Of a stretch of 64,000 nt of DNA, positions 19,986-37,676 are shown piece by piece. Both the position numbers and the translations under genes were made by a program. Each line of letters starts with the position of its first letter. The first letter of the stretch is position 1. The notes beneath the pieces are model-generated. The model saw only the letters and a program-made list of their open reading frames with translations, searched no databases and was not told where the DNA came from. The stretch lies in sequence record ON529858.1; one strand, written 5' to 3'.

Positions 19986-22718
19986 ATGTCCGTCTATTCC
20001 CTGGAAGAGCGCGAACGCGCCCGGCGCGCCGTCGCCAACCTGTCCGCCATGCAGACCGAGGCCAAGAAGGCTTCCGAGCGCGGCCTGATCCTGCCCGACA
20101 CCACCGCCCAGGCGATCATCAAGATCACCGGGTCGAGCGAACTGAGCCAGCAGGTGACCGCGCTCGGCCGCATCGGCAACACCGTCCAGACCCAGCACCT
20201 GGAGCGGCTGAAGCCCCTGGCGCACGACGACTTCAACGCCTTCTGCGAATACGTCAACCCGGCCGAGGCGCCGGCGTCGAAGTGGCACATCTACCTGACC
20301 GGCCTGCTTCAGCAGATCGAAGAGGACCCGGACCTGGAGCGGTTCGTGCTGAACTGCCCGCCCGGTCACGCCAAGCCGCTGCACGTCGACACCCCGGTCC
20401 TGATGGGCGACGGGTCCTGGAAGCGTCTGGGCGACATCGTCCCTGGCGATCACGTCGTCTCCGGCGAGGGAAACGTCTGCAAGGTGACCAAGGTCCACGA
20501 GCAGGGCGTCCAACCGATCCTGCGCATCCACACCAAGCACGGCCGCCAGATCGACAGCGCCCCGGACCATTCGTTCCGGGTCGGCTCCACCTGGAAGCAG
20601 GCCGGCGATCTCAAGCCGGGCGATCCGCTCGACGTGGTCGGCTCGCATGACCTGCGCTGGAACGCCTCTGGGGTATCGGATACCCGGATGTTCCGCCTCG
20701 CCGGCTACCTCTCCGCCCAGGGCGGGCGCAGCTTCTTCACCCGCGAGCACAAGGCCGGGCCGAAGACCTACCGCAACGTCCTGCTCTGGACCTCGGACCC
20801 GATCGCGTCCCAGGACATGCAGGCCTGCCTCAACGCTCTGAAGATCGACTTCACCGGCCGGCTGGCGAAGCATGAGAAGGTCTGGCGCCTGCGCCTGAAC
20901 ACGGCCTGGGGCGATGACAACGCCGCCCTGTTCAACATCGACCAGCGGGCCAACGAGCGCCGCATTCCGGACTTCGTCTTCAAGGGCGATCATGACCAGA
21001 TTGCGACCTACCTGTCGACGGTCTTCTCGCTGCTCGCCGAAGCGCCCGACCGCTACAAGCTGCCGCGCATGATCGTTTACGCCAAGTCGCCCGGCTTCGC
21101 TCGCGACCTCCAGCGGCTGCTCGCCGTGGTCGGCGTCCCGTCCTGCGTCAAGACCCCCTCGACCGGGCGCAGCCGCGTCATCCTTACCGGCCCCGAGATC
21201 AGCAGCTACTTCGCCGCCGGCCTGACCTTCCGCTCGCCCTTCGCCGAGCGCGTCGCTGGCCGCATGAAGTCCTACCCGGTAGCGCCGGCCCTACTTGGTG
21301 ATACCGTCCACCGGATCGAGGCGATGGAGCCGGCCGAGTGCCGCTGCCTCACCGTCAAGGGCGATCACACCTTCCTGGCCGAGAACGTGGTCGTCCACAA
21401 CTCGACCTACGCCTCGCGCCTGTTCGTCGCGTGGCGCCTGGGGCGCGACCCCAGCCAGAAGATCATCGGCGGCGGACACAGTCAGCGCTTCGTCGAGAAC
21501 GAGTTCTCCGCCAAGATTCGGAACCTCGTGCGGACGCCCGAATATCAGAACGTCTTCCCCAACGTGAAGATCGACCACGCGACGTCGGCTAAGGACCAGT
21601 GGGCGATCGCCGGACACGGCGGACAGTATGCCGCCAAGGGCGCCGGACAGGCCATCCACGGTCTGCGCGCCAACTTCGTCTGCATCGACGACCCCTACCC
21701 GTCGATCGCAAAGGCTGAGTCTCCGACGTATCGCGAAGAGGTTAGGACGTGGTTCTTTGGAGACGTCGGGTCGCGTTTGCTTCCCTACGCCAAGGTCTTC
21801 CTGATCATGACGCGCTTCCACGAAGAAGACCTGACAGGTTCTATCCAAGAGATGAACCCGAAACTTCCGAGTTACGCTCAATACCACATCGTCGAAGCGC
21901 CTGCACTGTGCTACGACCCGGAAACTGACGTCTTGGGCCGCGACCTCGGAGAAGTTCTTTGGGACTACTATGACCTGGATTATTTTCTGGCGAAGCAGGT
22001 TGAGTGGAAGTATCAAAGATTTGCCTTGGTGTATCAACAGCTTGCGGACGCGGCCTCCGGCGACAACATCGCCAGCAAGTTCCTCACCTATCTGACGCTC
22101 CCTCACCTGGAGCCGAAGGTGCTCGCCGAGCGCCGCGACCAGGGCCACGTCGACGCCCACAACCGGCCGATCCCGGACATCAAGGCCCACTTCAAGCGGG
22201 TCGTGGTGTCGGTCGACGCCGCCATCAAGAACACCGAGCGAGCGGACTATTCCGTCGTCCAGGTGTGGGGCGAGACGTATGACCGCAAGCACTACCTGAT
22301 CTACAACGAGCGCAAGAAGGTCGAACTCCTGGGGCTGATCCCCATGATCGAAAAGGTGGCCGTTCGCTACGCTGCGGACAGCATTTTGGTCGAAGATAAG
22401 GGCAACGGGACCGCCTATATCCAGTCCCGAGGCCAGACGGACAGCCAGCGCCGGCTCGCGCCCTGCCCGATCGTGGCGATCCAGGTCCCGAGCACCCAGG
22501 GCAAGGAGTTCCGCTTCGAAGAGATCACGCCGATGATCGAGAACGGCGAGGTCTTCATCCCGGAGACGGCAAGCTGGAAGGACCTGTTCGTCCGCGAGGT
22601 CGGGCAGTTCCCCGACGGCGCCAACGATGACCAAGTCGACGCCATGACGCAGTATCTCCGCTGGGCCAAGACCAAGCGCACGCGGTTCGGATCGAAGAAG
22701 GTTTCTGGCATGGGCTAG
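19986..22718 (+). CDS. terL: terminase large subunit (intein-containing)
   Basis: Spliced Walker A NCPPGHAK|ST, Walker B VCIDDP, LIMTRFHEEDL, nuclease SVD, LVEDKGNG, DDQVDAMTQ. Confidence 0.93.
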   Translation: MSVYSLEERERARRAVANLSAMQTEAKKASERGLILPDTTAQAIIKITGSSELSQQVTALGRIGNTVQTQHLERLKPLAHDDFNAFCEYVNPAEAPASKWHIYLTGLLQQIEEDPDLERFVLNCPPGHAKPLHVDTPVLMGDGSWKRLGDIVPGDHVVSGEGNVCKVTKVHEQGVQPILRIHTKHGRQIDSAPDHSFRVGSTWKQAGDLKPGDPLDVVGSHDLRWNASGVSDTRMFRLAGYLSAQGGRSFFTREHKAGPKTYRNVLLWTSDPIASQDMQACLNALKIDFTGRLAKHEKVWRLRLNTAWGDDNAALFNIDQRANERRIPDFVFKGDHDQIATYLSTVFSLLAEAPDRYKLPRMIVYAKSPGFARDLQRLLAVVGVPSCVKTPSTGRSRVILTGPEISSYFAAGLTFRSPFAERVAGRMKSYPVAPALLGDTVHRIEAMEPAECRCLTVKGDHTFLAENVVVHNSTYASRLFVAWRLGRDPSQKIIGGGHSQRFVENEFSAKIRNLVRTPEYQNVFPNVKIDHATSAKDQWAIAGHGGQYAAKGAGQAIHGLRANFVCIDDPYPSIAKAESPTYREEVRTWFFGDVGSRLLPYAKVFLIMTRFHEEDLTGSIQEMNPKLPSYAQYHIVEAPALCYDPETDVLGRDLGEVLWDYYDLDYFLAKQVEWKYQRFALVYQQLADAASGDNIASKFLTYLTLPHLEPKVLAERRDQGHVDAHNRPIPDIKAHFKRVVVSVDAAIKNTERADYSVVQVWGETYDRKHYLIYNERKKVELLGLIPMIEKVAVRYAADSILVEDKGNGTAYIQSRGQTDSQRRLAPCPIVAIQVPSTQGKEFRFEEITPMIENGEVFIPETASWKDLFVREVGQFPDGANDDQVDAMTQYLRWAKTKRTRFGSKKVSGMG
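20376..21401 (+). mobile_element. intein (342 aa, residues 131-472) with degenerate LAGLIDADG domain
   Basis: Starts PLHVDTPVLMGDGSWK, block B SAPDH, block F CRCLTV..DHTF, ends VVHN|S; LAGYLSAQG endonuclease-like motif. Confidence 0.9.
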
Positions 22719-22799
22719 GCCGTTAACCATGTTCGCTAACCATGGTCATGATGGCGACAATATGGCGTGTTAACCCTAAGAACCTCCTGGTTAACGGCG

Positions 22800-22921
22800 G
22801 GGACCCTGGCATTTTAACCATGGGGACCCGCCGGAATCAAGGCCAGGGACCCTCCGATTTTCACCTCGGGGACCCAACCAAATCATCACCAGGGACCCTC
22901 CGATTTTCACCTCGGGGACCC
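22800..22921. repeat. array of six GGGACCC boxes at exact 23-bp period
   Basis: Boxes at 22800, 22823, 22846, 22869, 22892, 22915. Confidence 0.92.
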
Positions 22922-22955
22922 TTCGAAATCCAGGGCCAAAGGAGCCCAGAACACC

Positions 22956-23156
22956 GTGGATCACGCTCAAATGGCCGCTTATCTGGCTGAACACCACCTC
23001 GGGCTCATCGCCATTGCGATCCTGCTGTTCGGCATCATCGCCGCTCAGGTCCGGGGCTCGATCCACAGCCGGTCCATCGCTCTGCTGAAGGACCGCAACG
23101 AGCGCCTGCTGCGGATCATGGAGCGCATCAGCGGCATCCGGCCCGAGGACGTCTAG
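22956..23156 (+). CDS. small membrane protein
   Basis: One TM segment, GGAG upstream. Confidence 0.55.
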   Translation: MDHAQMAAYLAEHHLGLIAIAILLFGIIAAQVRGSIHSRSIALLKDRNERLLRIMERISGIRPEDV

Positions 23157-23492
23157 CCCGCCGGCTGACGGAGTCATAGGTCACAGCAATCGTGACATCG
23201 GTCAGATATTCCACAGCAAAATCAGCCGCTTAGGCCCAAATCCCATTAAGGAATCATGCAGATGTTGCCTCGTATCATGACTCGCTGCGCTGCAATATGT
23301 GCAGTTTTCTGCCTCAATATCGCGATTTCGAGGGCGATCAAGCCCGAGCCCCAGCCGCGTGTCGATCCTCACCACCAGACCGACGCCGACACCACCCGCC
23401 AACTCTAGTCCCCTGTCAAGACCCCGGCCGACCACCGTGTCATAGGTCCGGGGCATCGTGACAAAATAGTTCAGTTCTCCAAGGATTTCCGT

Positions 23493-23750
23493 ATGTTCTA
23501 TCTGCTCGCCATCTGCGTCGTGATCGCCGCCCTGGGCGGCCTCTGGCTCTACATGAAGGTCCACAAGCGCCGCATCCTGGCCCTGGAGCAGGCCGAGGTC
23601 GACCGGGCCTATGATGAACTGGTCCTGGTCCTGGACCCCAACGCCGCCCACACCACCGCCAAGGCCTTCAACGTCGCCCTCCCGGCCTCGATCGACCGCC
23701 TCCAGGGCCAGCTTCGCGAGGATGGCGTGCCCGATACGACGCCGGCGTGA
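23493..23750 (+). CDS. small membrane-anchored protein
   Basis: N-terminal TM, AAGGA RBS. Confidence 0.6.
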   Translation: MFYLLAICVVIAALGGLWLYMKVHKRRILALEQAEVDRAYDELVLVLDPNAAHTTAKAFNVALPASIDRLQGQLREDGVPDTTPA

Positions 23751-23885
23751 TTCAACGCATCAACGATTCGACGCTTTGACGCTCGAACGCTTTGACGCTG
23801 GAGCGATTCAACGGGCGAGCGATTTGACGCGCCAGCGATTTGACGGTCGCACATTTCATTTCAACGCTGACCCGATTTGACGCGG
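23749..23885. repeat. degenerate 16-bp-period array (core TTYRAC)
   Basis: Cores at 23751, 23767, 23775, 23791, 23807, 23823, 23839, 23860, 23876. Confidence 0.8.
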
Positions 23886-23904
23886 GGTCGTTTTGCGCCG
23901 GTAG

Positions 23905-24127
23905 GGTTAACGCCCGCCGGCGCTGGCGATTCAGGGTTAACGTCCATTTAAGCCTGTCCCCGTTAACCTTCACGCTGTTAAGGTTAATGCTGCCCCAGGC
24001 CGTTAGGGTTAATCCCGTTAAGGTTAACGCCGCGTTAAGGTTACCCGTTAAGGTTAACGCCGCCCGACGGCGCGTTAACCATGAAGATTCATCATGAATC
24101 AGCCTAGTGAACAAACATGGTTAACGG
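23905..24127. repeat. dense TTAAC/GTTAA cluster (CtrA half-site-like)
   Basis: More than ten TTAA within about 220 bp of otherwise GC-rich DNA. Confidence 0.75.
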
Positions 24128-24194
24128 CCCAGGCAAGCCCAAAGGCCCCCAGGCTGGCGCCTGGAGGCCTCAAGGTCGCCGAGGTGCCGCCCGC

Positions 24195-24503
24195 CTAGGC
24201 GGCGAGCGCCACCCCCTGACCCAGGGCCGCCACCTTGTCCGCCAAGGCGGCGACGGCGGGCCTGAGCGGCGCCCGGATCGCCGGGACCGGGAGAACCCAG
24301 CCCCGCCCGGTCAAGAGCCGGTCGAGGGCGCCGAGCGTGGTCGCTTGCGCGCCGGTGAGAACCGGCCGCTTGGCGAGATCGGCCCGGACTTCCAAGAGCC
24401 GTTCGACCGGCACATTCTGGAGGGCGCGGGCCTGGACGGCGACGGCGTGAGCCGGGGCGGCGGTGGCGGCGATGAGGCCGACGGCGATGGCGAGGCGTGT
24501 CAT
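24195..24503 (-). CDS. putative exported protein
   Basis: MTRLAIAVGLIAATAAPAHA signal-peptide-like; GGAG RBS; promoter box at 24564-24578 on minus strand. Confidence 0.65.
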   Translation of the reverse strand: MTRLAIAVGLIAATAAPAHAVAVQARALQNVPVERLLEVRADLAKRPVLTGAQATTLGALDRLLTGRGWVLPVPAIRAPLRPAVAALADKVAALGQGVALAA

Positions 24504-24671
24504 GTGATAGGCTCCTGAGATGCGCCGGGTAAGTCCGGACATCCACAACCTAGCGGGCAGGTCCTAACAAAGTCCTAACGTCCGAATCTTTTCTCGACTG
24601 CCGGCCGTTAACGATTCGTTAGGACTTTGGGGCTAGGGTGGCTTCATCGCAAACCACTGATGGAGTCCCCC

Positions 24672-25541
24672 ATGACCGCCCGCAAGCCCGCCGCCGCCCT
24701 CACAAATCCCTCCCATAAGGTCGTCGGGCCGGACGGGACGGAGTTCTTTCTGATCCGCCGCAAGGGCGCCCGCCTGCGCATCAAAATCCTCTTCGCCGCG
24801 AACGGTTTCGCGGCGGGCGAGGTCAGCGAGGGTTGGGGACCGACCGGCGCCGATGACGTCCTGATGGGGCATTGGACCGGCCCGCTGGGCTTCCACTTCG
24901 GTTACAACGTCATCCGCCAACTGCCCCAGGGCACGCATTGCGTCGAGATCGGTCGCGAGACCGGCGAGGCGAGCCTTCATGACTATCAGACCGACATCCT
25001 GTATAACGGCGAGGTCACCAACTTCCCCCTGGTCCGCGCCGGGTTCAACGTCGGGCGTTTCGGGCGCAAGGGCCTGCCGGTCACCCGGCCCCAGATCGCC
25101 GAGGCCCGCGCCGTCACCCTCGCCCATAAGGCCGCCCTGATCGACGGGACCTATCGCCGCGACGACGGCCCGATGATCAAGAACACGGCGCCGGACGACG
25201 GCGGCTATCGCCCGACCTATGTCCGCGCCGAGGGCTCGCCCGTCCCCGCCGACCTGCTGGCGGAGTTTGTCGCCGACTGTGACCGCCTGCTGGCCTATCT
25301 GGACTTTCTGGAGACCCTGCCGCCCCTGCCCGAGCGTCCCCGGACCTCCCCGGCGCCGGAAACTCAACTGTCCTGGCTGCGCACCCACGCCCGCTATGAG
25401 CGCGGCGAGAACCTGCGCGCCTATCTGCTGGGCGTGCTGGAGTCCGGGATGAATGACCCGGCCGCCTATGAGGCGGCCCGCGCCGCTGACACCCAGGCGC
25501 ACAACGCCCGCGTCGCCCAGGCGAGAAAATCGGCGGCGTAA
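24672..25541 (+). CDS. early hypothetical protein (cassette)
   Basis: GGAG RBS, ATG 24672; TAA stop lies inside the next junction element. Confidence 0.7.
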   Translation: MTARKPAAALTNPSHKVVGPDGTEFFLIRRKGARLRIKILFAANGFAAGEVSEGWGPTGADDVLMGHWTGPLGFHFGYNVIRQLPQGTHCVEIGRETGEASLHDYQTDILYNGEVTNFPLVRAGFNVGRFGRKGLPVTRPQIAEARAVTLAHKAALIDGTYRRDDGPMIKNTAPDDGGYRPTYVRAEGSPVPADLLAEFVADCDRLLAYLDFLETLPPLPERPRTSPAPETQLSWLRTHARYERGENLRAYLLGVLESGMNDPAAYEAARAADTQAHNARVAQARKSAA

Positions 25542-25602
25542 ACCTCTCGTTAAGACCTCCCCCGTATAAGGGGGAGGTCACCACTGAGAAGGAGTTCTCG
25601 CC

Positions 25603-25986
25603 ATGCCTCTCCCCGCCCACCTCTTCGCCTCCGATGACGGCGGCCTGTATGACACCCGCTCGCCGGACTGGTCTAAGGGCAAGCCCCTGCGCACCGGCTA
25701 CCAGGGCGCCGCCGCCCAGATCGAAACCCTCGCCCAGGTCAAGGCCGCGCTGCGCGCCGGGGGCTTCACCTTCCCCGGCGCCTACCCCCTGTATTTCGTC
25801 ACCCGCGACGGCTGCGCCCTCTCGTTTGACGCGGTCCGCGCCGAGTTCGCCGAGGTCTGCGAGGATTTCCTGGCGGACGTTTCCACCGGCTGGCGGATCA
25901 CCGGTTGCACCGTCAACTATGAGGACTCGGACCTGACGTGTGAACACACGGGCGAGAAGATTCCGGCCGCATACAGCGACGAGTAA
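25603..25986 (+). CDS. early hypothetical protein (cassette)
   Basis: AAGGAG RBS; FPGAYPLYFVTRDG...VNYED motif typical of phage hypotheticals. Confidence 0.75.
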   Translation: MPLPAHLFASDDGGLYDTRSPDWSKGKPLRTGYQGAAAQIETLAQVKAALRAGGFTFPGAYPLYFVTRDGCALSFDAVRAEFAEVCEDFLADVSTGWRITGCTVNYEDSDLTCEHTGEKIPAAYSDE

Positions 25987-26049
25987 CGATCCGTTAAGAC
26001 CTCCCCCGTATAAGGGGGAGGTCACCACCGGCAAGAGAAGGAACCCCGA

Positions 26050-26610
26050 ATGCCCGAGACCGTCACCCAGGCCGAGGCCGCCACCGTTCCCGAATACGCG
26101 GAACACGCTGAGCCGCCCGCCTACGCCGTCGCCGTCTGGACTGATGACGTGATCACCAATCACGGCGGCGACCTGCCCCTGTGGGGCCTGGACGTGCCCG
26201 TGCCCGCCATCGGCGCCGACATCGTCGTGACGATCAACCGTTGCGGCCTCGCCTACGTCACCGGCTATTTCGTGCAAGATGGCTGGCTGGGCGTGCTCTG
26301 CACCCTGCGCAACCCGCCGGAATGGCATGTGAAGCAGAACAAGGGTGATCCCAAGGGCCACGCCTTCGCCCCTGAGTTCCGCCCGGCCGTAGCCGCCGAC
26401 CTCGCCGACCCGCCGGTCGAGACGGGCGTCGCCCGCGCCGTCCGGCTGGGCTACACGGTCGAGTCGACCACCGATGAGGCGGACGGCGTGCCGATCTTCC
26501 GCTACGTCCGGCCGAACGGCGAGCCCGATTCCGAATGGCTGTCGAGCCTCGCCAAAATCTGGGAAGGCGCCGGGTCGGATTCTTTTCTTTGGGAAATGGA
26601 CCACGGGTAA
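26050..26610 (+). CDS. early hypothetical protein (cassette)
   Basis: AAGGA RBS; stop inside junction. Confidence 0.7.
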   Translation: MPETVTQAEAATVPEYAEHAEPPAYAVAVWTDDVITNHGGDLPLWGLDVPVPAIGADIVVTINRCGLAYVTGYFVQDGWLGVLCTLRNPPEWHVKQNKGDPKGHAFAPEFRPAVAADLADPPVETGVARAVRLGYTVESTTDEADGVPIFRYVRPNGEPDSEWLSSLAKIWEGAGSDSFLWEMDHG

Positions 26611-26671
26611 CCTCTTGTTAAGACCTTGCCGGTAGGTTGGCTTCATCAACCACCGGCAAGGAGCCAACCCC

Positions 26672-27031
26672 ATGCGATCCACCCTTTCCAATCTGGTCAT
26701 CGCCCTCAAGACCGCGATCGCCGACAACCGCCGCCTGCCCCGCCCGGCCGATCCGGTCGAGGCCGCTGTCATCGACGGCGTCGGCGCGCTTCAGGCCGAG
26801 GCCCTGGAGAAGGCCGAGGGCCTGCTGGCGGGCCTCGCCTATGAGATCGAGATCGCCCAGGCGGGCGCCCTCATCGGCCTGCTCCGCCTCGACACCCCCT
26901 GCCCGATCAAGGCGGACGCCCAGGCCAAAGCCATCCGCGCCGCCCTCCTGCCCGACGGGATCGAGGCGACCCTCTACGCGGTCGAGATCAACAAAAGCCG
27001 GGTGATCGCTGTCGCTCAATACCCCCGGTAA
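26672..27031 (+). CDS. early hypothetical protein (cassette)
   Basis: AAGGAG RBS; stop inside junction. Confidence 0.7.
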   Translation: MRSTLSNLVIALKTAIADNRRLPRPADPVEAAVIDGVGALQAEALEKAEGLLAGLAYEIEIAQAGALIGLLRLDTPCPIKADAQAKAIRAALLPDGIEATLYAVEINKSRVIAVAQYPR

Positions 27032-27096
27032 CGATCCGTTAAGACCTCCCCCGTATAAGGGGGAGGTCACCACCGTTTGAGAAGGAACCCGCCCAG

Positions 27097-27462
27097 ATGA
27101 GCAAGATCACGATTGAGGAAATCGAAAGCTGGACCGCCGAGGTCGAGCGCCCGCGCCAGACGCTGGAGGTCATTTTCCAAACGCTGGGCTATGACAACGG
27201 GACCAAACGAGTCGACGCCTATGTGATCGTCAAGCGCCCAGGCGGCTACGGTCGCGAGGCGGGCGTCGCCCGTGTCGTCCACGCCAGCGGCTGCTACACC
27301 TACGGGCTGGCCCTGATGTCGCTGGAGCGCCAAATGCGCGCCGCCCGCTTCGCCCCCGCCGCCCAGGCCCTGGTCGAGGGCTTCGCCGCCCAGGCCCGGC
27401 GCCAGGGGATGGACCGAACCGAGTTTCCGAAAAGCGTCACCCTCATTCCGACCGAGCGGTAA
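27097..27462 (+). CDS. early hypothetical protein (cassette)
   Basis: AAGGA RBS; stop inside junction. Confidence 0.7.
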   Translation: MSKITIEEIESWTAEVERPRQTLEVIFQTLGYDNGTKRVDAYVIVKRPGGYGREAGVARVVHASGCYTYGLALMSLERQMRAARFAPAAQALVEGFAAQARRQGMDRTEFPKSVTLIPTER

Positions 27463-27524
27463 CGGTCTGTTAAGATTTGGCCTGTAGGGTCTGATCATCA
27501 ACCCCGGACAAGGAGTCCCCGCCC

Positions 27525-27818
27525 ATGACTAAGCCCGCCAAGCCCCGCAAGCTGACCCGCGCCGAACTGGCCCGCAAGGTGCTCGAACTGGAGGGACAAC
27601 TGGCGTCGTCCTATCACTTCGCCACCCTCGAACTGCACAAGGCGGGCGACAACCTCATGGCGTCCGGCGTGCTCATCTCCCTGACCGCCCTAGGCGGGCG
27701 CGAGATCATCAAGCCCGTGGTGATCCGCGACGGCCTGAGCGCCGCCACCATCGCCGCCCTGCGCGCCGATATGGTGCGCAGCTATGAACTGGCGACCTCT
27801 TTTAAGCCCAAGGCGTAA
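27525..27818 (+). CDS. early hypothetical protein (cassette)
   Basis: AAGGAG RBS; stop inside junction. Confidence 0.7.
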   Translation: MTKPAKPRKLTRAELARKVLELEGQLASSYHFATLELHKAGDNLMASGVLISLTALGGREIIKPVVIRDGLSAATIAALRADMVRSYELATSFKPKA

Positions 27819-27880
27819 CCCTTCGTTAAGACCTCGCCTGTAGGGTGAGGTCATCAACCGCTGGACAAGGAGTCCCCCGA

Positions 27881-28435
27881 ATGCCGACCGCCAAACAAAC
27901 CGCCCAGGCCATCGCCCTGACCCCCTCGACGGGCGAGGCCGTGGCGATGATCCTTCACGCGCTCGACATCGGCCGTCTGTATTTTCAGCGCGAGGTCGAG
28001 GCGACCGACTCGCTGTCGAATAAGGAACTGGCCCAGGTCCGGCTCGACACATTCGAACGCGCCTCGATCATCGCCCGTGAATCCGGCGTGCTCATCACCG
28101 CTGAAGGCGAGAGCGTCGCGGCCATTCTCGACGATCTTTTCAACGCCATGCCTACCCCCGGAACCGACAAGCTGTCAAAGCCGTGGAACCGCGCGCTGAA
28201 GCAAGCCCGCCGCCCGCGCTACCGCTTCAAAGCCGGGACCGGGAGCGCCACCGTGACCGATACGCTTAAGGGCGTCTCCGCCACCACCCGCCACCCCGGA
28301 CCGGTCGCGGCGGCGCGCGAGGCCTTCGCCAATACCGACTCGGGCGCCCACGTCACCCCGGCCGGGGTCGGGGTCTGCGGACTGGATGAGGACAAGGCCC
28401 GCTCATTCCTCGCCACCGCTGAGCGCGGCCGGTGA
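27881..28435 (+). CDS. early hypothetical protein
   Basis: AAGGAG RBS, ATG 27881. Confidence 0.7.
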   Translation: MPTAKQTAQAIALTPSTGEAVAMILHALDIGRLYFQREVEATDSLSNKELAQVRLDTFERASIIARESGVLITAEGESVAAILDDLFNAMPTPGTDKLSKPWNRALKQARRPRYRFKAGTGSATVTDTLKGVSATTRHPGPVAAAREAFANTDSGAHVTPAGVGVCGLDEDKARSFLATAERGR

Positions 28436-28728
28436 GGGCCGGTCAAGTCAAGGTCGCGGTCCCCCTCTCGTTTGGGGCCTGCGGCTATGTCTGGCGCCCG
28501 AACAAAACCGCCGCCGGGATGACGAAAACCGACGCCCGGCGCGGTCAACGGCGCGGCCCAGGCGAGGGCGTCGGGCTCAAGCTGGCGGTGCGCGGGACCA
28601 CCGACGCCCTGGATATGGCCCTGGTTTTCTGCATCACCCGCCGAAACCCGGACTATCTGTGTCTGAACAAATCCGGCAAGGCCCGGCTGGCGCGCCTGAG
28701 AAAACGCCGCGCCGTAACCCTTCGTTAA
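28432..28728 (+). CDS. early hypothetical basic protein
   Basis: GTGA overlap; stop is the second half-site of the junction. Confidence 0.55.
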   Translation: MRAGQVKVAVPLSFGACGYVWRPNKTAAGMTKTDARRGQRRGPGEGVGLKLAVRGTTDALDMALVFCITRRNPDYLCLNKSGKARLARLRKRRAVTLR

Positions 28729-28778
28729 GACCTTGCCGGTAGGTTGGGCTCATCAACCACCGGCAAGGAGCCGCGCCG

Positions 28779-28895
28779 ATGAAACCGACCCGCAACCCCG
28801 CCGCGAAGGCCCTGGCCTCCGCCGCCTACCGTCAACAGGTCGTCAAGCCCCGCAAGGGTCGCGGCGCCTACTCTCGAAAGGGAAACCGCCCATGA
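28779..28895 (+). CDS. ArfA-like 38-aa peptide (not in ORF track)
   Basis: MKPTRNPAAKALASAAYRQQVVKPRKGRGAYSRKGNRP; own promoter, AAGGAG RBS, ATGA overlap with next gene. Confidence 0.75.
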   Translation: MKPTRNPAAKALASAAYRQQVVKPRKGRGAYSRKGNRP

Positions 28896-29374
28896 CCGCC
28901 CTCGACACTGTCAACACCTCGTTTTTCTTCGTCGTCCTGCGCGACGCCCAGGGCGTCCACCTCGCCACCGAAACCGTCTGGTGCCCGCCCGGCTCGAAAC
29001 CCGCCGACATCATCGGCGACGCCTGCTCTTTCTTCCAAGTGGACGAAAACGGCGCCTATGACGACGACGTGATCGCCGCCGGTGTCATCGACCTGTTCGG
29101 CCCCTTCGATCAAGGTTCGGCCCTGACCGTCAAGGTCGCCCGCCCGGACGGCGACGACTTCGCCGACTTCCAGATCGTCCCCGAGACCACCGCCGAACCT
29201 TTCGACTATATGGGCCAGATCATGGCCTATGAGGCGGGCGAACTGGACGACGACGACGTCGACACCCTGTTCCAATATCTGGTCGACACCGGCCTCGCCT
29301 GGAGCCTGCAAGGCGCCTATGGGCGCACCGCCCAGGCCCTGGCCGCCGCCGGTCGAATCACCCTCCCCGAGTAA
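28892..29374 (+). CDS. early hypothetical protein (two-domain)
   Basis: ATG 28892; C-terminal IMAYEAGEL...FQYLVDTGLAWSLQGAYGR domain common in phages. Confidence 0.7.
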   Translation: MTALDTVNTSFFFVVLRDAQGVHLATETVWCPPGSKPADIIGDACSFFQVDENGAYDDDVIAAGVIDLFGPFDQGSALTVKVARPDGDDFADFQIVPETTAEPFDYMGQIMAYEAGELDDDDVDTLFQYLVDTGLAWSLQGAYGRTAQALAAAGRITLPE

Positions 29375-29435
29375 CGAACCGTTAAGACCTCCCCCGTATA
29401 AGGGGGAGGTCACCCACCGAGAAGGAACCCAGATC

Positions 29436-30152
29436 ATGGCCGCTGGAGCCACAAAAGAACAGATTGCCCGCGCCACCCGCACGGCGCTGCAAAAGATCGC
29501 CAAGGCGTCCGGCGGGACCTATACCGCCGCGACCACAAAGACCCGCGCTTTCGCCAGCGGGACCACGAACGACGGCCTGCGCTGGATCGCCAACGTCGGG
29601 AGCGGCAACGCCTCGAACGGTCAAACCTTCCTGAGCCTGAACATTTCCGTCAACGGATCGTTTGGCGAAGCCATCACCCGCACCGGCTATTTTGAAGGCG
29701 ACGTGACCGTCGCGGGCGTCTGCCTGTTGTTCCGCCTGATCAACGGCTATCCCCTCGAACTGGACGGCTCGCCCGGCGACTTCCGCCTGCTGCTGGCGGC
29801 GCCCGGCGTCTCGAACTGGTTCGCCGACCGCTACGCCCTGACCTTCCGGGGCGACGGTTTCGACGTGCTGGACAAGGCCCGCAAAATGGTTCGGACCTTC
29901 ACCGCCGCCGAGGCCGATCAAGAGGCCCGCCGCCTCGCCCTGGCCTTCCGTTCGGACCTGCGCGCCGAGACGATGCCGACCCACTATGACGCGGAAACCT
30001 ACGCCCGCGTCCGGGCTTCTGAGGCCGCCTTGTCGCAACGTCGCGGCGCCGGGCTGGACGCATGGGGCGACGACCGCCTCGCCGTCTATCCCGACGGCTG
30101 GACCGGCGCCCTGACCGACTGGAGGCTGGCCCATGGCCCCCGTGAGAACTGA
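29436..30152 (+). CDS. early hypothetical protein
   Basis: AAGGA RBS, ATG 29436. Confidence 0.7.
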   Translation: MAAGATKEQIARATRTALQKIAKASGGTYTAATTKTRAFASGTTNDGLRWIANVGSGNASNGQTFLSLNISVNGSFGEAITRTGYFEGDVTVAGVCLLFRLINGYPLELDGSPGDFRLLLAAPGVSNWFADRYALTFRGDGFDVLDKARKMVRTFTAAEADQEARRLALAFRSDLRAETMPTHYDAETYARVRASEAALSQRRGAGLDAWGDDRLAVYPDGWTGALTDWRLAHGPREN

Positions 30153-30309
30153 CGGCCTCGTGCCGCTGGAGGTCTGCGCCTCCGCCCTCGAACTCGCCAA
30201 GCGCGATGTCGAGGCGCGGCTGGCGCGTGACCCGAACGCCCACGACGCCGACGTCCTGCGCAGCCAGCGCGACACCTACGCCCGCGCCCTGAGCGTGGCC
30301 TATTCCTGA
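30133..30309 (+). CDS. early hypothetical protein, 58 aa (not in ORF track)
   Basis: GGAGG RBS; MAPVRTDGLVPLEVC... Confidence 0.5.
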   Translation: MAPVRTDGLVPLEVCASALELAKRDVEARLARDPNAHDADVLRSQRDTYARALSVAYS

Positions 30310-30398
30310 AAAAATCTCGACTGCCGGCGCTGCGGTAACTTCTCGTTAAGACCTCTCCCGTATGGTCTCAATATCAACCCCGCCAAGGAGACCACCGA

Positions 30399-30839
30399 AT
30401 GCCCCGCATCACTCAAGCCGCCGCCTTCGTCGCCGCCCACCTGCCCGCGCTGCTGGGCTATGTCGAGGCCGACAAGACCGCCACCCCGCACAAGCCCGGC
30501 CCGGCCTTCACGGGGTCGAGCAACTGCCAAGCCAATATCGAGCGCGACTATGCCCGCCGCAACGGCGGCCATTGGTTCGACAAAGAGACCTTCCGGTTTT
30601 TCCGGACCACCATCACGGCCGGTTTCTGGGACGTGCCCGAGGCGGGCGTCACCCTCTTTGTGACCGGCGAGCGCGACACCTGCCAGCCGGGCCGGAGCCG
30701 GGCCTATACGGTGCGCGCCTACTTCTGGAACGGCGCCGACATCGAAACGATTGGCCCGTTCAACGAAACGAGCCAGCGCGTGGCGGAGCAAGCCGTGCCC
30801 CTCTTCGTCGCCGCCCTGAAAGAAAGGGCGGCGGCGTGA
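30399..30839 (+). CDS. early hypothetical protein
   Basis: AAGGAG RBS; GHWFDKETFRFF motif typical of phage hypotheticals. Confidence 0.75.
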   Translation: MPRITQAAAFVAAHLPALLGYVEADKTATPHKPGPAFTGSSNCQANIERDYARRNGGHWFDKETFRFFRTTITAGFWDVPEAGVTLFVTGERDTCQPGRSRAYTVRAYFWNGADIETIGPFNETSQRVAEQAVPLFVAALKERAAA

Positions 30840-31051
30840 GCCGGGTCCTGGTCGGGACCGTCCGCGTCCTGGACGGTCAAACCGTCTGCGTCCGCCCTGA
30901 CGGCCGCGTGCATGAAGTCGGCGGCAAGGTCTCGACCTTCCCCGTTTTCGGCGGCCTGCGCCCCTATGATGAGGGCAAGCAGATTTGGCGCGTGGCGGGC
31001 GTGACCCAGATGGAAAACGACTCGCAGCGCGACCGCCGCCTGGGCCGCTAA
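30836..31051 (+). CDS. early hypothetical protein
   Basis: GTGA overlap; TAA stop inside junction. Confidence 0.6.
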   Translation: MSRVLVGTVRVLDGQTVCVRPDGRVHEVGGKVSTFPVFGGLRPYDEGKQIWRVAGVTQMENDSQRDRRLGR

Positions 31052-31113
31052 CCCTTCGTTAAGACCTCGCCTGTAGGGTGAGGTCATCAACCACCGGACA
31101 AGGAGTCCACGCC

Positions 31114-31581
31114 ATGACCACCAAACTGATCGAGGTTCGCGGCCCGACCGCTGAAGAGGCCGCCGCCCTAGGCGGCGACGTGGTCTTCGTCCGCCGCGAC
31201 CGCGCGGGCGTCGAGACCAAAATCCACGCCAGCGTGTCGCACGAGTCGTGGTCGCAATGGGGCGCCGACCGTGACCTGCTGGGCGAAAATCAAGAGGCCG
31301 TCGAAAGCTGGCGGCGCGGCCTGGACGACGTTCTAGGGCTGATCGACGAATCGGACTTCGCCGACGAACCCGAAGAGGCCGAGTCCGGCGATTGGGAAGT
31401 CGGCGACCGGGCCTATGTGGGCGCCGAGGGTGACCGGGGCGAGATCATCGAGATCATCACCACCGGCCTGCCCGACTCGGCGCGAGGCCGCGCCCGCGTC
31501 AAGATGCAACTCGACTATTGGCGCGTCGGCGAACTCTGGGAAGGCTCCATCGACGACATCGACACTCTGGACGACGAGTAA
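31114..31581 (+). CDS. early hypothetical acidic protein
   Basis: AAGGAG RBS; stop inside junction. Confidence 0.7.
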   Translation: MTTKLIEVRGPTAEEAAALGGDVVFVRRDRAGVETKIHASVSHESWSQWGADRDLLGENQEAVESWRRGLDDVLGLIDESDFADEPEEAESGDWEVGDRAYVGAEGDRGEIIEIITTGLPDSARGRARVKMQLDYWRVGELWEGSIDDIDTLDDE

Positions 31582-31642
31582 CGATTTGTTAAGACCTCGC
31601 CCCTAGGGTGAGGTCATCAACCCCGGACAAGGAGTCCCCCAG

Positions 31643-32308
31643 ATGACGACCACCCCGAACTTCTCCACCCCCTCGCTCGCCGTCGCATTCTTCGCCAGCG
31701 CGGGCGGCGCCGCCTTCCTGAAGGCCGTGCTGGACCTGCGCGCCGCGACCGTCGGCATCGACGACGAACCGGACATTTCGAACGCCCTTGTCATCGAGAT
31801 CGGCGCCGCCAAGAACGCGCTCGACGACGTCATCGGCCTGCTGGCCGAGGCGGGCGTGCAAATCGTCATCGCCGCCCCCGGCGTCTATGACAACGTGCCG
31901 CAATCCATTCTCGACGCGGTTTTCAACCCGCCGAAGGAACTGGCCGCCGCTGTCGCCGACATCAACGCCGGGGCCGCCCTCAAGACCACGCTGGAGCCGG
32001 GCGACATCGGATTCGCCCAGGCGTCCGGCTACGGCATCGGCCCGGCGAGCGAGACCGGCGACGGCCGCGAAGGGTTCTGTTTCTTCGCCCCTGACGGCCG
32101 CCGCTCCGCCGCCTTCACCCTGCAACTGACGGCATGGCTTGCGGCCGTGCGCGAGGTCGAGGGCCTGCCCTACGCCGTCGGCGAGCACGGCCTGCCGCCG
32201 CTCGCCCGCTTCGCCACCGAGGCCGAGGGCGCCGCCTATATCGACACGCTGGACCCCGTCAAGCGAGAGGCTGGCGGCTACTATCTGGACGGCCCGGCGG
32301 ATGACTAA
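31643..32308 (+). CDS. early hypothetical protein
   Basis: AAGGAG RBS. Confidence 0.7.
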   Translation: MTTTPNFSTPSLAVAFFASAGGAAFLKAVLDLRAATVGIDDEPDISNALVIEIGAAKNALDDVIGLLAEAGVQIVIAAPGVYDNVPQSILDAVFNPPKELAAAVADINAGAALKTTLEPGDIGFAQASGYGIGPASETGDGREGFCFFAPDGRRSAAFTLQLTAWLAAVREVEGLPYAVGEHGLPPLARFATEAEGAAYIDTLDPVKREAGGYYLDGPADD

Positions 32309-32516
32309 GCCCCGCCGCTCCCCCAAGCGCCGCCTCGCCACCTACACGGCGAGGAACGCCCCGCCGCGAGGCAACGCCCGGTCCTATCTTCTGGACTGCC
32401 TGCGCCTCGCCGCTGACTACCGCCGCCGAGGCGTTCCGGCCGTCGCCCGCCTTGTCCTGGCGAATGTCCGCGCCGACCGCCTCGCCCAGCCCGGCCGTCT
32501 CTCGCTCCCCGGCTAA
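32301..32516 (+). CDS. early hypothetical Arg-rich protein
   Basis: ATG 32301 overlapping previous stop. Confidence 0.5.
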   Translation: MTKPRRSPKRRLATYTARNAPPRGNARSYLLDCLRLAADYRRRGVPAVARLVLANVRADRLAQPGRLSLPG

Positions 32517-32712
32517 GTCACGATTCCACCCACCTATGACATCTAGCCTTGTATTCCCCGGAACAAACAAGCATAGATGTCATTATTCCCCGGCGAGATG
32601 ACTCGTCTCATGACACAGGAGGCCTAGCACATTCATTTAGTTGAGGGTTTTATCAAGGGTTCCGCCCTGATCGCTGCACTCGTTTTTCTCATGCTTTTCT
32701 TCTAGCGCGAGA

Positions 32713-32834
32713 GGGACCCACGAAAATCTAGGCAAGGGACCCGTCGGATTCGTCCGGCGGGTCCCTTCGCATTTCAGGGCAGGGACCCGCGAGATTTAAG
32801 GGCAGGGACCCGCGCGTTTTCATGGCCGGGACCC
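32713..32834. repeat. second array of six GGGWCCC boxes at exact 23-bp period
   Basis: Boxes at 32713, 32736, 32759 (GGGTCCC), 32782, 32805, 32828. Confidence 0.92.
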
Positions 32835-33013
32835 TAGGGAATCCTCCCCAGGATTGGAGGCCGTTTTCCGGCCCGCTGAGCGCCTTGCCGCACCTTCCGG
32901 ACCCAGGGCCTGGACCGACCCAGGCCCAGGCCCTGGCGGGCCTCCCAGGCGTTTACGATTTGGTAAGACCTGCCCGCTAGGATCACGTCATCAACCGCAC
33001 AAGGAATCCCCCC

Positions 33014-33631
33014 ATGACCTTCCCCGTCTACACCGCGACCGCCGCCTCTGTCGGCGCCGCCCATATCCTGCGCGACGGTCAAGCCGTGCTCTACGTCAAG
33101 ACGATGCGCGACCCGTCCGACTCGACCCGGCCCCTGCTGTCGGATGACGCCCTAGGCGACTTGGTCGAGGCGACGGCCGAGCGCCTGACCGGCGCCACCC
33201 TGGACCGCGCCGACGCCGTCCTGCTGGCGCGCGTGCTCGACCCGGCATTCGCCACCACCGACGCCGACCTCGCCCAGGTCCGGGCCGCGCTGAACTTCGC
33301 CCTGCAAGACGCCCCAGGCGAGAAGCAGGCCGCCCGGCGGCGGCTGGCCGAGATCACCCCCGAGCAGCGCGCCCGGATCGACCGGGACGTCGCCCAGGCC
33401 CAGGGCGTCGCCACCTATCAGGGCTACGCCTGCCTCGCCTATGTGGACCGGATCGGCGGCGTGGTCATCAAGGACTCGACCGACGGGCGCGACGCCTACG
33501 TCCAACCCGGCGACGACGCCGCCGCCCTGCGGGCTGAACTGGAGGCGGCCGAGGGCGTGCCCGAGCCGACCACCTCCGCCGCCCTAGGCCCGCACGACCT
33601 GATCGAGAACATCCTGCGAGAATACTTCTAG
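33014..33631 (+). CDS. early hypothetical protein
   Basis: AAGGA RBS, junction promoter at 32952. Confidence 0.7.
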   Translation: MTFPVYTATAASVGAAHILRDGQAVLYVKTMRDPSDSTRPLLSDDALGDLVEATAERLTGATLDRADAVLLARVLDPAFATTDADLAQVRAALNFALQDAPGEKQAARRRLAEITPEQRARIDRDVAQAQGVATYQGYACLAYVDRIGGVVIKDSTDGRDAYVQPGDDAAALRAELEAAEGVPEPTTSAALGPHDLIENILREYF

Positions 33632-33688
33632 GCCGTTCACACTTCGTTAGCACCTCCCGGCTATGGTCGGGAGGTCGAACGGAAAAGC

Positions 33689-33830
33689 GCTTTGATCGCC
33701 CAGGGATTTGATCGCCGAGCGATTTGATCGCCCAGGGATTTGATCGCCGAGCGATTTAACCAGCGGGCGATTTAACCAGGGAGCGATTCAACAACCGCCC
33801 GTTTCATTTTGACCGGGAGCCGATTTGATC
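33689..33830. repeat. second 16-bp-period array
   Basis: Cores at 33691, 33707, 33723, 33739, 33755, 33771, 33787, 33808, 33824. Confidence 0.85.
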
Positions 33831-33835
33831 CTGGT

Positions 33836-33970
33836 TAGTTAACGGCGTGTTAACGAACATGAACGCGATATAGTTAACGAACATTAACCATGATGTGGTT
33901 AACGCAGCATTAACCTTCACGCCGTTAAGGTTAACGGCGCGTTAATGATGAACGAATATGGTTAACGCGA
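33836..33970. repeat. second dense TTAAC cluster
   Basis: Shares TTAACCTTCACGCYGTTAAGGTTAA with 23963 (copy at 33910). Confidence 0.75.
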
Positions 33971-34143
33971 TAGCCGTCCCCCGCCGTTGTGCCCCTTAAG
34001 TTCGAAGAGCCCGGCCTAGTCTCAAGAGTAGCACGCCGAATCCTAACAAGTCACTAACAAAATCAAGAAAAGTTCTTTTCGGGCGTTAATCTCTTCTTAA
34101 GGACTCGGGCCTAGATTGGCCTAGTCAACAACGGAGCAACCCA

Positions 34144-34467
34144 ATGACAACCCGCACCGCCGCCCAGACCGCCGCCCTCGCCGACATGGTCGCGAAGTTC
34201 GAAGGCATCGCCCAGACGCTGGAGTCCGCCGCCCTGACCGCTACCGGTTACATTCTGGCTTGGCCGACCGGCCTAGGCATCCGCTGGGTCGATGGCTCGC
34301 CCGTCGTCTGCGGAGTGCTACACGCCGACCCGATCACCGACTCGGCCCAGACGTTCACGATCCAGAACGGCGCCGGTGAAGTCGCCCGGCTCTTCACCCG
34401 CAAGGAAGCGCTAGAGGGCGCCGCCGCCTCCGCCCGCGAGTCGCTCGCATTCATGAAGGCCGCCTAG
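34144..34467 (+). CDS. early hypothetical protein
   Basis: GGAG RBS; perfect TTAA-N7-TTAA at 34086. Confidence 0.7.
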   Translation: MTTRTAAQTAALADMVAKFEGIAQTLESAALTATGYILAWPTGLGIRWVDGSPVVCGVLHADPITDSAQTFTIQNGAGEVARLFTRKEALEGAAASARESLAFMKAA

Positions 34468-34535
34468 CAGGATCGGCGCCCGGCTCAGGCCGGGCGCCAG
34501 ACCCTGGCCCCATAGTTAACGAAATCGGCTTTTCT

Positions 34536-34642
34536 GTTAACCATGTTTGGTCACCATGAAGAAACATGGTTAACCGCGTTAACCATGTTTGGTCACTATG
34601 AACAAACATGGTTAACGCGATAGTCGATCCCTCCCTAAGACT
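34536..34642 (-). ncRNA. candidate small hairpin RNA (two tandem 39-bp palindromic units)
   Basis: Units 34536-34574 and 34578-34616 downstream of minus-strand promoter box 34660; no ORF. Confidence 0.4.
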
Positions 34643-34706
34643 ACTCTAATCTCAAAAAGTTAACAGGAGGTTAACGCCGGGAGAAAAATCTCCCGGCGCC
34701 GACCTG

Positions 34707-35015
34707 CTAGAGGCGGAGGCCGACCTTGGCGCCGGGCTTGCCTTGCGGCCGTTCGGCCTCCGCCGGTTCGATCCAGTGCGCGAGGCCGAACGCTTGCACG
34801 CTGAAAGGCTCGCGCTTGACGGACTCGGCGGAGGCGGCGCAAGTCGCGTCATCCAGAAGCGAATCGGCGTTCGCGTCGTCGTCCGGATAGAGGTCATTCC
34901 GCGTGGCGACCAAATCGGCGCAAAGGGTAAAAAACGCATCTTCAAAGGATGCGCAAACGACGGGCTCCGAGTCCGGGAGATAGCCGGGAGCGTTGAAGCC
35001 GACAAGGTAAGCCAT
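34707..35015 (-). CDS. early hypothetical protein
   Basis: MAYLVGFNAPGYLPDSEP; promoter box at 35084. Confidence 0.7.
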   Translation of the reverse strand: MAYLVGFNAPGYLPDSEPVVCASFEDAFFTLCADLVATRNDLYPDDDANADSLLDDATCAASAESVKREPFSVQAFGLAHWIEPAEAERPQGKPGAKVGLRL

Positions 35016-35094
35016 GGGGGCTGATCCTCAAGAGCGGGGCGCCGCCAATCGGCGCCCCTTGTGACCTGTATAGGGGCGAAGTCTTAACGAACCG

Positions 35095-35250
35095 TTAAAC
35101 CGGCTCGACCCGGATAATCAGGGCGCGATTGCCGAACGCGAGGCGCGCGGCCTCTTCGCCGCCTTCGCCGCGCCAGATGCAGGCATGGGGCGCGCCCTCT
35201 TCGCCCTGAACCCAAACGCGGAAGGCGGAAGCGGCGGAGGCGGTTTTCAT
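35095..35250 (-). CDS. early hypothetical protein, 51 aa
   Basis: ATG 35250; TAA stop forms the half-site of the minus-strand junction. Confidence 0.55.
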   Translation of the reverse strand: MKTASAASAFRVWVQGEEGAPHACIWRGEGGEEAARLAFGNRALIIRVEPV

Positions 35251-35409
35251 GGCGGTATTCCCTAGGCGGGAGAAGCCCCGCCCCCTGTATCTAGGCCTCC
35301 GCATTTTTCTTGTCAACACTTGCAAGCCAGTAACCTTTTGTTAAGACTTTGGCCCTAGGTTGAGATTGTTCAGACGGATTGGCCGCCGGGACAGTGAAGG
35401 AAAAACACC

Positions 35410-35838
35410 ATGCGCAACGCTTCGATCATTCTCCCCGCTCGCGACAATGACGGCGCCGACCTCTCGCCCTTGCACGCCATTCTGGCGGCTGAACTGTGCA
35501 ACACGTTCGGCGGCTTCACTGCCTCCGCCGTGACTGGCGCATGGCGCGACGACACGGACGGCCGCATCTATCAGGATGAGTCGACGGAATACCGCATCGC
35601 CGCCGACTGGAATCCCGCACAACGCGAGGCGCTGGAGTCCATCGCCGCTCGCTACTGTGCGGAGGCCCGTCAGGTGGTCATCTATGTTCAGCACGCGAAC
35701 GGCGCCGTTTCCTTTGTCCCGCCGGTGGAATACGCGGAAGCCGTCGAGACGGCGCCCCGCACGGGCGAGCCGGACCACAAGGGCGCCCGACGCAAACAGG
35801 CGGAGGCGTTCGGCGAACTCTTCGCCCGCGTCGCCTAG
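35410..35838 (+). CDS. early hypothetical protein
   Basis: AAGGA RBS; FGGFT....GAW motif. Confidence 0.7.
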   Translation: MRNASIILPARDNDGADLSPLHAILAAELCNTFGGFTASAVTGAWRDDTDGRIYQDESTEYRIAADWNPAQREALESIAARYCAEARQVVIYVQHANGAVSFVPPVEYAEAVETAPRTGEPDHKGARRKQAEAFGELFARVA

Positions 35839-35967
35839 GCCAAGCGAGAGAGGCGCCGCCCTAGGGCGGCGCCGATTCTTTTCTGGCCGTTAAGGGTTTG
35901 GTAACACCCTGGCCCTAAACAGGAAGGGCGGAGGCGATTGGCGCCCCGCCCTTTAGGACCTGAACCG

Positions 35968-36180: not shown

Positions 36181-36257
36181 GGCGAAGGGCGCCCGGCAGA
36201 GCCGGGCGCCCACTGCCGGCCGTTAACGGTTTGTTAAGACTTTCCGGCTATCCTGAC

Positions 36258-36952: not shown

Positions 36953-36979
36953 CCTCTTGTTAAGACTTTCCCCGTAAAC

Positions 36980-37012: not shown

Positions 37013-37028
37013 AGCAAGGATCGCCCCC

Positions 37029-37672: not shown

Positions 37673-37676
37673 GGCC

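Follow-up and report, generated by a model that had tools for sequence, protein, structure and literature searches.

GGGACCC box arrays in Brevundimonas phage vB_BgoS-Bajun as part of a composite cis-module inside the predicted terminal repeat

The way in which phages with long exact terminal repeats (the T5, SPO1 and phiCbK types) choose and cut the ends of their DNA is still poorly understood. A 64,000-nt stretch of the Brevundimonas phage vB_BgoS-Bajun (bases 62,001-126,000 of record ON529858.1, hereafter the window, whose numbering is used for Bajun throughout) raises this question in a particular form, since it holds two regular arrays of the heptamer GGGWCCC between the terminase genes terS-terL and the portal gene (portal from 40898). 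The Bajun record, of 207,261 bp and from the subfamily Dolichocephalovirinae, is a circular deposit without an annotated terminal repeat, and in phiCbK-like phages the block from terL to portal corresponds to a long direct terminal repeat (DTR) (Gill et al. 2012, PMC3556154). A preliminary description of the window proposed that the arrays are signals bound by the small terminase subunit (TerS) at the two ends of a direct terminal repeat of ~9.9 kb, with their spacing setting its length. Do the arrays mark the ends? Comparison with relatives indicates that the array is part of a conserved composite cis-module and not an end marker, and it points to a single box of the same heptamer as the more probable terminus signal.

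Box arrays and the ends of the terminal repeat

Both arrays were found exactly as first described, with boxes starting at 22800, 22823, 22846, 22869, 22892 and 22915 and at 32713, 32736, 32759, 32782, 32805 and 32828, always in exact 23-bp steps, the first boxes being 9,913 bp apart. In all the 16-bp spacers there is an A/T tract, 4-9 nt past the box, and 81 nt separate the terL stop from array 1 (~80 bp had been given). Eleven of the twelve boxes read GGGACCC, and the one at 32759 reads GGGTCCC. The heptamer is not above chance in the window (18 copies of GGGWCCC against 19.6 +/- 4.1 in shuffles), but 300 first-order Markov sequences gave no more than two boxes in a row at any fixed period of 15-30 bp, compared with the six observed, twice, in the phage. 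It is the clustering of the boxes, not their number, that is non-random. When all 207,261 bp of the genome were scanned piecewise, no further arrays appeared; array 2 gave no BLAST match outside Bajun, and a scan for consensus promoters and terminators at the two arrays showed nothing specific. The single inverted box among the twelve is the third of array 2, and boxes 2 and 3 of this array (32736-32765) form the arms of a strong inverted repeat or hairpin, GGGACCCGTCGGA TTCG TCCGGCGGGTCCC.

The ends themselves are known for several relatives. In phiCbK, tag ligation and coverage placed the left terminus at codon 652 of terL and the right one in the interval that separates genes 20 and 21, so that the DTR measures 10,287 bp; the same breakpoints apply to Magneto, Swift, Karma and Rogue, and the left end of Colossus falls just past terL (PMC3556154). 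With respect to these mapped or annotated ends, the homologous array does not coincide with the terminus but is internal, 853 bp inside the left end in phiCbK and 355 bp in Colossus. At the right end of the relatives, a single box occurs within GGGACCCAA(A)GGCC, and the annotated boundary lies 45 nt past the start of this box in phiCbK, CcrSC, Rogue and CcrBL10, and 46 nt past it in CcrPW. In its loose form, i.e., GGGACCC as a terminase or terminal-repeat signal, the original proposal comes out strengthened by this right-end box, and the constant distance of 45 nt from a 7-bp box to the right cut that follows it, seen in three genera, offers a lead for the whole phiCbK group. The left ends show some disagreement among records. 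A single array-type box stands 59 nt before the left terminus of Colossus; CcrPW begins 1 nt before that same GGGACCC box, so the two annotated termini are 59 nt apart despite near-identical sequence, and one of the two annotations is probably imprecise.

Bajun carries one copy of this right-end (R-type) motif in its whole genome, at 38640, which is 5.85 kb beyond array 2. In a BLAST comparison, the segment 38637-38684 is matched by segments ending at 10,287, 9,946, 9,971, 10,254 and 10,321, and these five ends are exactly the published DTR lengths of five phages. On the left side, the phiCbK DTR starts at nt 1955 of terL, and the CcrSC record begins at the homologous position. Because of this unique R-type motif and of the terL base homologous to the phiCbK left end, the Bajun DTR is predicted to span 21940-38684, or 16,745 bp (83,940 and 100,684 of the record), a length close to the ~16.7 kb of Colossus. 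Two independent lines agree with the prediction. Past array 2, the Bajun genes at 35410-35838 and 37029-37415 have as homologs phiCbK gp018 and gp019, two genes internal to the DTR of that phage, and the block of CtrA boxes described below ends at ~38.7 kb. From the predicted left end it would then be 860 bp to array 1 and 10,773 bp to array 2, both arrays most likely being internal. A literature search found no paper describing the Bajun termini; base-level predictions at 21940 and 38684, which differ from those made before, constitute a further lead.

What remains of the two-ends proposal is its placement of the arrays within the terL-to-portal DTR block and the link of the heptamer to a genome end. 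In its favour, the 9,913-bp spacing is near the 9.9-10.3-kb DTRs of phiCbK-type phages and array 1 adjoins terL. Moreover, Lacusarx and the related contig L048, with one module after terL, show a looser cluster of three to four boxes 10.7-11.5 kb farther on, close to where the ~10.5-kb double-coverage region of Lacusarx ends, and the tail of array 2 weakly resembles the CcrPW right-end motif (a T-run, CCGG and GCGCC, 40-57 nt past the last box). Against it stand the internal position of the homologous array at the mapped left ends, the location of the right-end motif at 38640 and not at array 2, and the continuation of phiCbK DTR-gene homologs and CtrA boxes for 5.8 kb past array 2. Nor does the number of arrays follow the proposal, which needs exactly two with a spacing equal to the DTR length: there is one array in the phages whose DTR is annotated, two in Bajun, and three in Gurke, Papperlapapp and Marchewka. 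Every comparative test available contradicts the view that the arrays stand at both ends of a ~10-kb repeat and act as its ruler, a refutation that comes by homology and not by direct measurement, and which leaves this view very unlikely.

Conservation of the array and the composite module

Array 1 has homologs by BLAST in 38 phage records. Direct scans revealed six-box arrays in phiCbK (853-980 of the DTR), Colossus (355-481) and CcrPW (418-543), five-box arrays in CcrSC and in the Sphingobium phage Lacusarx, and arrays of seven to nine boxes in three Brevundimonas jumbo phages. The conservation reaches uncultured viral contigs with a TerL only 33-52% identical to that of Bajun, six of eight of which keep an array 31-240 bp past terL; the persistence of a multi-box array right after terL, even in very distant relatives, is a second lead for the phiCbK group. 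Among 85 units from 15 arrays of nine phages, 84 boxes share one orientation, that of terL, and the unit is bipartite, with (G)GGGACCCT followed after 3-4 nt by RAATTY. The array may be described accordingly as a tandem of asymmetric ~18-bp candidate protein-binding sites (GGGGACCCT, 3-4 nt and RAATTY) set 22-26 bp apart. The period is 23 bp in Bajun, 24-25 bp in phiCbK and 25 bp in some jumbo-phage arrays, and it alternates between 22 and 25 bp in Colossus and CcrPW. Since it varies from 22 to 26 bp, the exact 23-bp step is a detail of Bajun, and not a conserved ruler.

The three jumbo phages extend this picture. Downstream of terL, their arrays hold 7, 6 and 2 boxes in Gurke, 9, 5 and 3 in Papperlapapp, and 9, 5 and 4 in Marchewka, all co-oriented, spaced first by ~18-21 kb and then by 12-13 kb. 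In Marchewka an R-type motif occurs ~39 kb after terL, with a peptidase gene and then the portal gene behind it, an order shared with Bajun and Colossus. Over the 47 kb examined in this phage, 70 CtrA boxes were found, none of them outside the interval from terL to this motif. The second arrays of the three phages keep an exact 24-bp period. The one of Marchewka lies in frame within an open reading frame (ORF) of 327 aa (L008 15376-16359, minus strand) that has its own CtrA-type promoter and ribosome-binding site (RBS) and encodes five GDPAxxxx octapeptide repeats, and ORFs of 333 aa in Gurke and 327 aa in Papperlapapp span the second array as well. In Marchewka, this would be a DNA element that lies within a gene, unless the ORF is over-called.

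The preliminary description was right about the arrays themselves, and missed both the single motif box at 38640 and the companion repeats that follow each array. In Bajun, a 16-bp array of the GCGATTTGAC type and then GTTAAGGTTAAC/GTTAACCATG repeats trail both GGGACCC arrays at near-equal offsets, the 16-bp units (GCGATTTGACGC or GCGATTTGATCGCC) containing a Caulobacter -35-like TTGAC. Arrays of this TTGACGC type are also found ~1 kb past the GGGACCC arrays of phiCbK (1764-1897), Lacusarx and Marchewka, in the last case past every one of the three, where the GTTAAGGTTAAC repeats follow only the first two. On the upstream side, the order terL stop, CtrA-type boxes, array is common to Bajun, phiCbK, Lacusarx, L048 and Marchewka. 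The full module would thus read CtrA-type boxes, GGGACCC array, ~0.9 kb with one or more small genes, TTGACGC-type 16-bp array and GTTAAGGTTAAC repeats, and it can be taken as a recurring unit because the three arrays of the jumbo phages carry companion repeat arrays as well. In the relatives it begins right after terS-terL, some hundreds of bp inward from the left end of the packaged DNA. The two Bajun modules share only their repeat arrays (70-88% over 25-100 nt) and show no gene homology; a recent segmental duplication was considered and rejected, since nothing is shared outside these arrays. Array 2 would represent a second whole-module copy, probably resulting from growth of the repeat block by accretion of another left-end unit. 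The terminal-repeat block of the Brevundimonas phages is built of one to three such modules and appears to have grown by adding them, so that module count bears on the growth of the repeat from 10 to ~39 kb.

Besides the modules, the block carries at least 14 plus-strand copies of a promoter-like cassette of 55-75 nt, from 24609 to 38290. Each comprises a near-perfect CtrA box (G/TTAAC-N6-GTTAAGAC), a -10-like CTGTAGGGT, a hairpin, CATCAACC, an RBS (GGACAAGGAG) and an ATG, and in four of them (25554, 25998, 27043 and 29386) there is a perfect 26-bp palindrome, GACCTCCCCCGTATAAGGGGGAGGTC. Canonical CtrA boxes number ten in the Bajun genome, all within 23937-36949. These cassettes belong to the class of CtrA-dependent DTR promoters known from phiCbK; CtrA boxes are reported to concentrate in the DTRs of phiCbK-like phages, and the phiCbK DTR genes are controlled by CtrA (Mascolo et al. 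2022, PMC9437464).

What may read the boxes

Which protein would read the boxes, and for what? We rank first, tentatively and with somewhat less than an even chance of being right, the reading of GGGACCC as the recognition element of TerS. The box stays beside terS-terL across deep divergence (array 1 and its counterparts in relatives lie next to the terminase genes), a single box is found at fixed distance from the right cut, TerS is of the SF6/G1P type with a conserved N-terminal region, and among the block proteins searched no other DNA-binding protein was detected. The 19092-19982 protein matches the PHROG family phrog_11494, terminase small subunit (E 2e-61), and a profile of six homologs finds in the PDB the TerS of Pam5 (1e-24), that of SF6 (3zqp, 3e-5) and the DNA-binding domain 2cmp (2e-3); this match to members of solved structure identifies it as a small terminase of the SF6/G1P type, whose conservation lies in the N-terminal ~130 aa. 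As to the alternatives, no gene for a binder was found beside the arrays, since Pfam searches with 30 proteins of the block and PHROG searches with ten gave only domains of unknown function. Most economically, the heptamer would be the DNA element read by this small terminase. The multi-box array would act as a high-avidity TerS assembly site for the initiation of packaging, analogous to lambda cosB or SPP1 pacL, and the single right-end box (GGGACCCAAGGCC; 38640 in Bajun) would position the terminal cut 45 nt downstream.

Known packaging systems offer several points of comparison. In SPP1 and SF6, as here, short repeated boxes with A/T tracts stand beside the terminase genes, and the Bajun TerS falls in the structural family of G1P (3zqp and 2cmp matches). 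The SPP1 pac site consists of two separate box sets, pacL and pacR, bound by G1P, and Bajun too has two separate sets. The SPP1 boxes differ in flanking the cut within ~200 bp, in a headful system, whereas the arrays of the relatives stand 355-853 bp from the left cut, and the phiCbK-like class has long exact terminal repeats with extra arrays 10-33 kb away. Lambda cosB (R3-I1-R2-R1) has repeated small-terminase sites just inside the first-packaged end with an interspersed site for the host factor IHF, a place taken here by CtrA-type boxes; it differs in that its three sites of 16 bp all lie within ~120 bp of the nick, in its cohesive ends without terminal repeat, and in its TerS, which is of the Nu1 family. 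In T7, the SRL and SRR arrays of closely spaced 7-bp units lie outside a 160-bp terminal repeat, on both sides. The likeness to T7 lies in two similar short-repeat arrays associated with a direct terminal repeat, and Bajun has a T7-like DNA polymerase; the difference is that the arrays are here inside a repeat block of 10-39 kb and one to three in number. Iteron arrays such as those of lambda ori, P1 incC/incA and RK2 share direct repeats of ~18-19 bp, a spacing of ~22-24 bp, four to nine copies and sometimes the occurrence as two arrays, but in our case there is no adjacent initiator gene, there are no conserved DnaA boxes, and the position after terL is constant. A further comparison is with the CtrA-box-rich terminal repeats of the phiCbK-like phages, i.e., the same block and the same CtrA-type promoters, with the arrays inside (PMC9437464; PMC3556154). 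In the passages of these two papers that were searched by term, there was no mention of the GGGACCC arrays, the 16-bp companion arrays or the right-terminus box. An injection-stop signal of the T5 type was also considered; the homolog of T5 A1 is placed outside the repeat of the phiCbK phages (PMC3556154).

Several observations weigh against the terminase reading. The choice of TerS as the reader is a guess from position. The distance from array to left cut is large and variable, unlike that between cosB and cosN or between pacL and pacC, and the lack of a conserved period implies that there is no fixed geometry for wrapping around a ring. Extra full-size arrays 10-33 kb inside the block in Bajun, Gurke, Papperlapapp and Marchewka make a unique packaging start hard to reconcile. 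The second jumbo-phage arrays, with their exact 24-bp period and the in-frame Marchewka copy, fit it poorly as well, and the third ones immediately precede a CtrA-type promoter, a placement that suits a regulator of transcription. As for the right ends, those of CcrPW, CcrSC and CcrBL10, all from the Ely laboratory, may be partly set by analogy with phiCbK, and the coverage-based right boundary of Colossus lies ~430-600 bp before its R-type box.

A regulatory role of the arrays is the first main rival, and seems possible although doubtful. The boxes would be operators bound by a phage or host transcription factor, possibly together with CtrA, that switches the early genes of the terminal repeat, or they would serve to block read-through from the late terL transcript, with the single right-end box in the same regulon. 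The arrays are intergenic or at gene starts, have CtrA-type boxes on their flanks and run in the direction of transcription; array 1 reaches up to an RBS and hence stands in a 5' leader; a TTAA-N7-TTAA promoter adjoins the third array of the jumbo phages; and several arrays per block, in a region whose phiCbK genes are under CtrA control (PMC9437464), suit regulation better than they suit a unique pac site. Yet the Pfam and PHROG searches of block proteins found no candidate regulator, the position after terL is kept where the downstream genes are unrelated, which would be unexpected for a gene-specific operator, and the fixed 45 nt from box to right terminus is left unexplained. A role at the RNA level, as a structured or protein-binding RNA in the leader, or as coding peptide repeats, is the least probable. 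Array 1 is probably transcribed as leader, and the second arrays of 24 bp, one of them encoding GDPAxxxx repeats, would be in line with it, but the 23-bp period of Bajun cannot hold a reading frame and the 22-26-bp periods of other arrays exclude coding. An RNA element was rejected, as the fold z-scores are weak and alike on both strands (-1.9 to -2.7) and there is no Rfam match.

The spacing and size of the units also recall iterons, so that the module could be a plasmid-like replication origin or partition site of a circularised episome, gated by CtrA like the Caulobacter origin, a proposal we regard as unlikely. Repeats of ~18 bp at 22-26-bp spacing in tandem are typical of iterons, several repeat classes are combined with CtrA boxes, and GC content nearby falls to 0.51-0.58. 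Iteron arrays pair in P1-type plasmids, and the two or three phage arrays could do likewise. It would also fit that Dolichocephalovirinae are reported to persist as replicating episomes, the origin of which is still sought (PMC12195562). No initiator-like or ParB/ParR-like gene adjoins the arrays, however, and no Rep or DNA-binding domains were found in the block proteins searched; the neighbouring genes are not conserved, the replication module of the phage is far away, and the right-terminus box would be unexplained. DnaA-box-like 9-mers cluster at Bajun array 1 only, with none to two near the arrays of eight relatives. The cluster, five near-consensus 9-mers (TGATCCACA type, one mismatch) within 820 bp around array 1 (22297-23118), was rejected as a coincidence because it is absent in these eight relatives. 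In a combined and rather improbable version, the composite modules would be cell-cycle-gated origins or segregation sites for episomal persistence, with the heptamer co-opted to position the right-end cut. If true, this would fill the missing origin postulated by Mohammadi and Ely (2025), and the number of modules (one, two or three) would reflect stepwise growth of the terminal repeat by whole-module capture. In any case, the modules are the obvious place to seek the episomal origin of the Dolichocephalovirinae.

Genes and other features of the locus

The coordinates of the features of the window are collected in Table 1. The terL genes of Bajun and phiCbK are of equal length and collinear, internal stops being absent, and Bajun terL is 78% identical in nucleotides to phiCbK-like terL. 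The phiCbK gene is annotated as intein-containing, and the Bajun record says of its terL of the same length only "terminase large subunit". The 3' edge of array 1 coincides with the RBS of the small membrane-protein gene BAJUN_01640, which has its parallel in phiCbK, where gp001 lies directly 3' of the array.

Table 1. Features of the terS-to-portal region of Bajun, in positions of the window
Feature	Start	End	Strand	Description	Basis or remark
terS	19092	19982	+	Small terminase subunit, 296 aa, SF6/G1P-type; candidate box reader	PHROG and PDB profile matches
terL	19986	22718	+	Large terminase subunit, 2,733 nt	Annotation; stop 22716-22718
Predicted left terminus	21940	21940	+	Predicted first packaged base	Homology to phiCbK terL codon 652
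terL-to-array 1 spacer	22719	22799	+	GTTAACCATG / GTTAAC CtrA-half-site-like boxes	Sequence
Array 1	22800	22937	+	Six GGGACCC boxes, 23-bp period; unit GGGACCC-N4-A/T tract	Box scan
BAJUN_01640	22971	23156	+	Small hydrophobic (membrane) protein gene, 61 aa, directly 3' of array 1	
Companion array 1b	23732	23860	+	About eight 16-bp units, type GCGATTTGACGC	Repeat analysis
Companion array 1c	23937	24140	+	GTTAAGGTTAAC / GTTAACCATG repeats; canonical CtrA boxes at 23937 and 24024	
Small-gene block	24609	38330	+	Small genes, each behind a CtrA-box promoter-like cassette (TAA-N7-TTAAGAC, hairpin, RBS)	
Array 2	32713	32850	+	Six boxes, 23-bp period, third inverted	Within 700-bp intergenic region
Companion array 2b	33686	33792	+	About seven 16-bp units, type GCGATTTGATCGCC	
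Companion array 2c	33839	34100	+	GTTAAGGTTAAC / GTTAACCAT repeats; four canonical CtrA boxes	
Palindromic units	34524	34631	+	Two 42-bp units, GTTAACCATG...CATGGTTAAC	
Right-terminus-type motif	38640	38684	+	Single GGGACCC box in GGGACCCAAGGCC...GTTAACCACGTTTTGGGCGCCCCC	Predicted right terminus after 38684
Second single box	39444	39450	+	Past the predicted right terminus	Compare phiCbK 10458, Colossus 17312

As a test for a host factor, sets of three boxes separated by 15-19 nt were sought in 185,579 bacterial genomes; among the matches listed, most came from actinomycetes and are probably coding repeats, and they have no bearing either way on Caulobacter or Brevundimonas. In a literature search the heptamer gave only unrelated primer matches. 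Past the predicted right terminus of Bajun, an A+T-richer non-coding stretch (38800-39100) precedes a minus-strand peptidase gene, and an 18-bp tandem repeat, ACCGATCCAGCCCACTCA, occurs in 2.4 copies at 39170-39213. The left end of Colossus (1-1931) is a gene-free region of 1.9 kb with dense repeats, comprising the six-box array, ATCCGGACAT, GACGCCATTCCATTTCGCC and about eight GTTAGGGTTAAC units.

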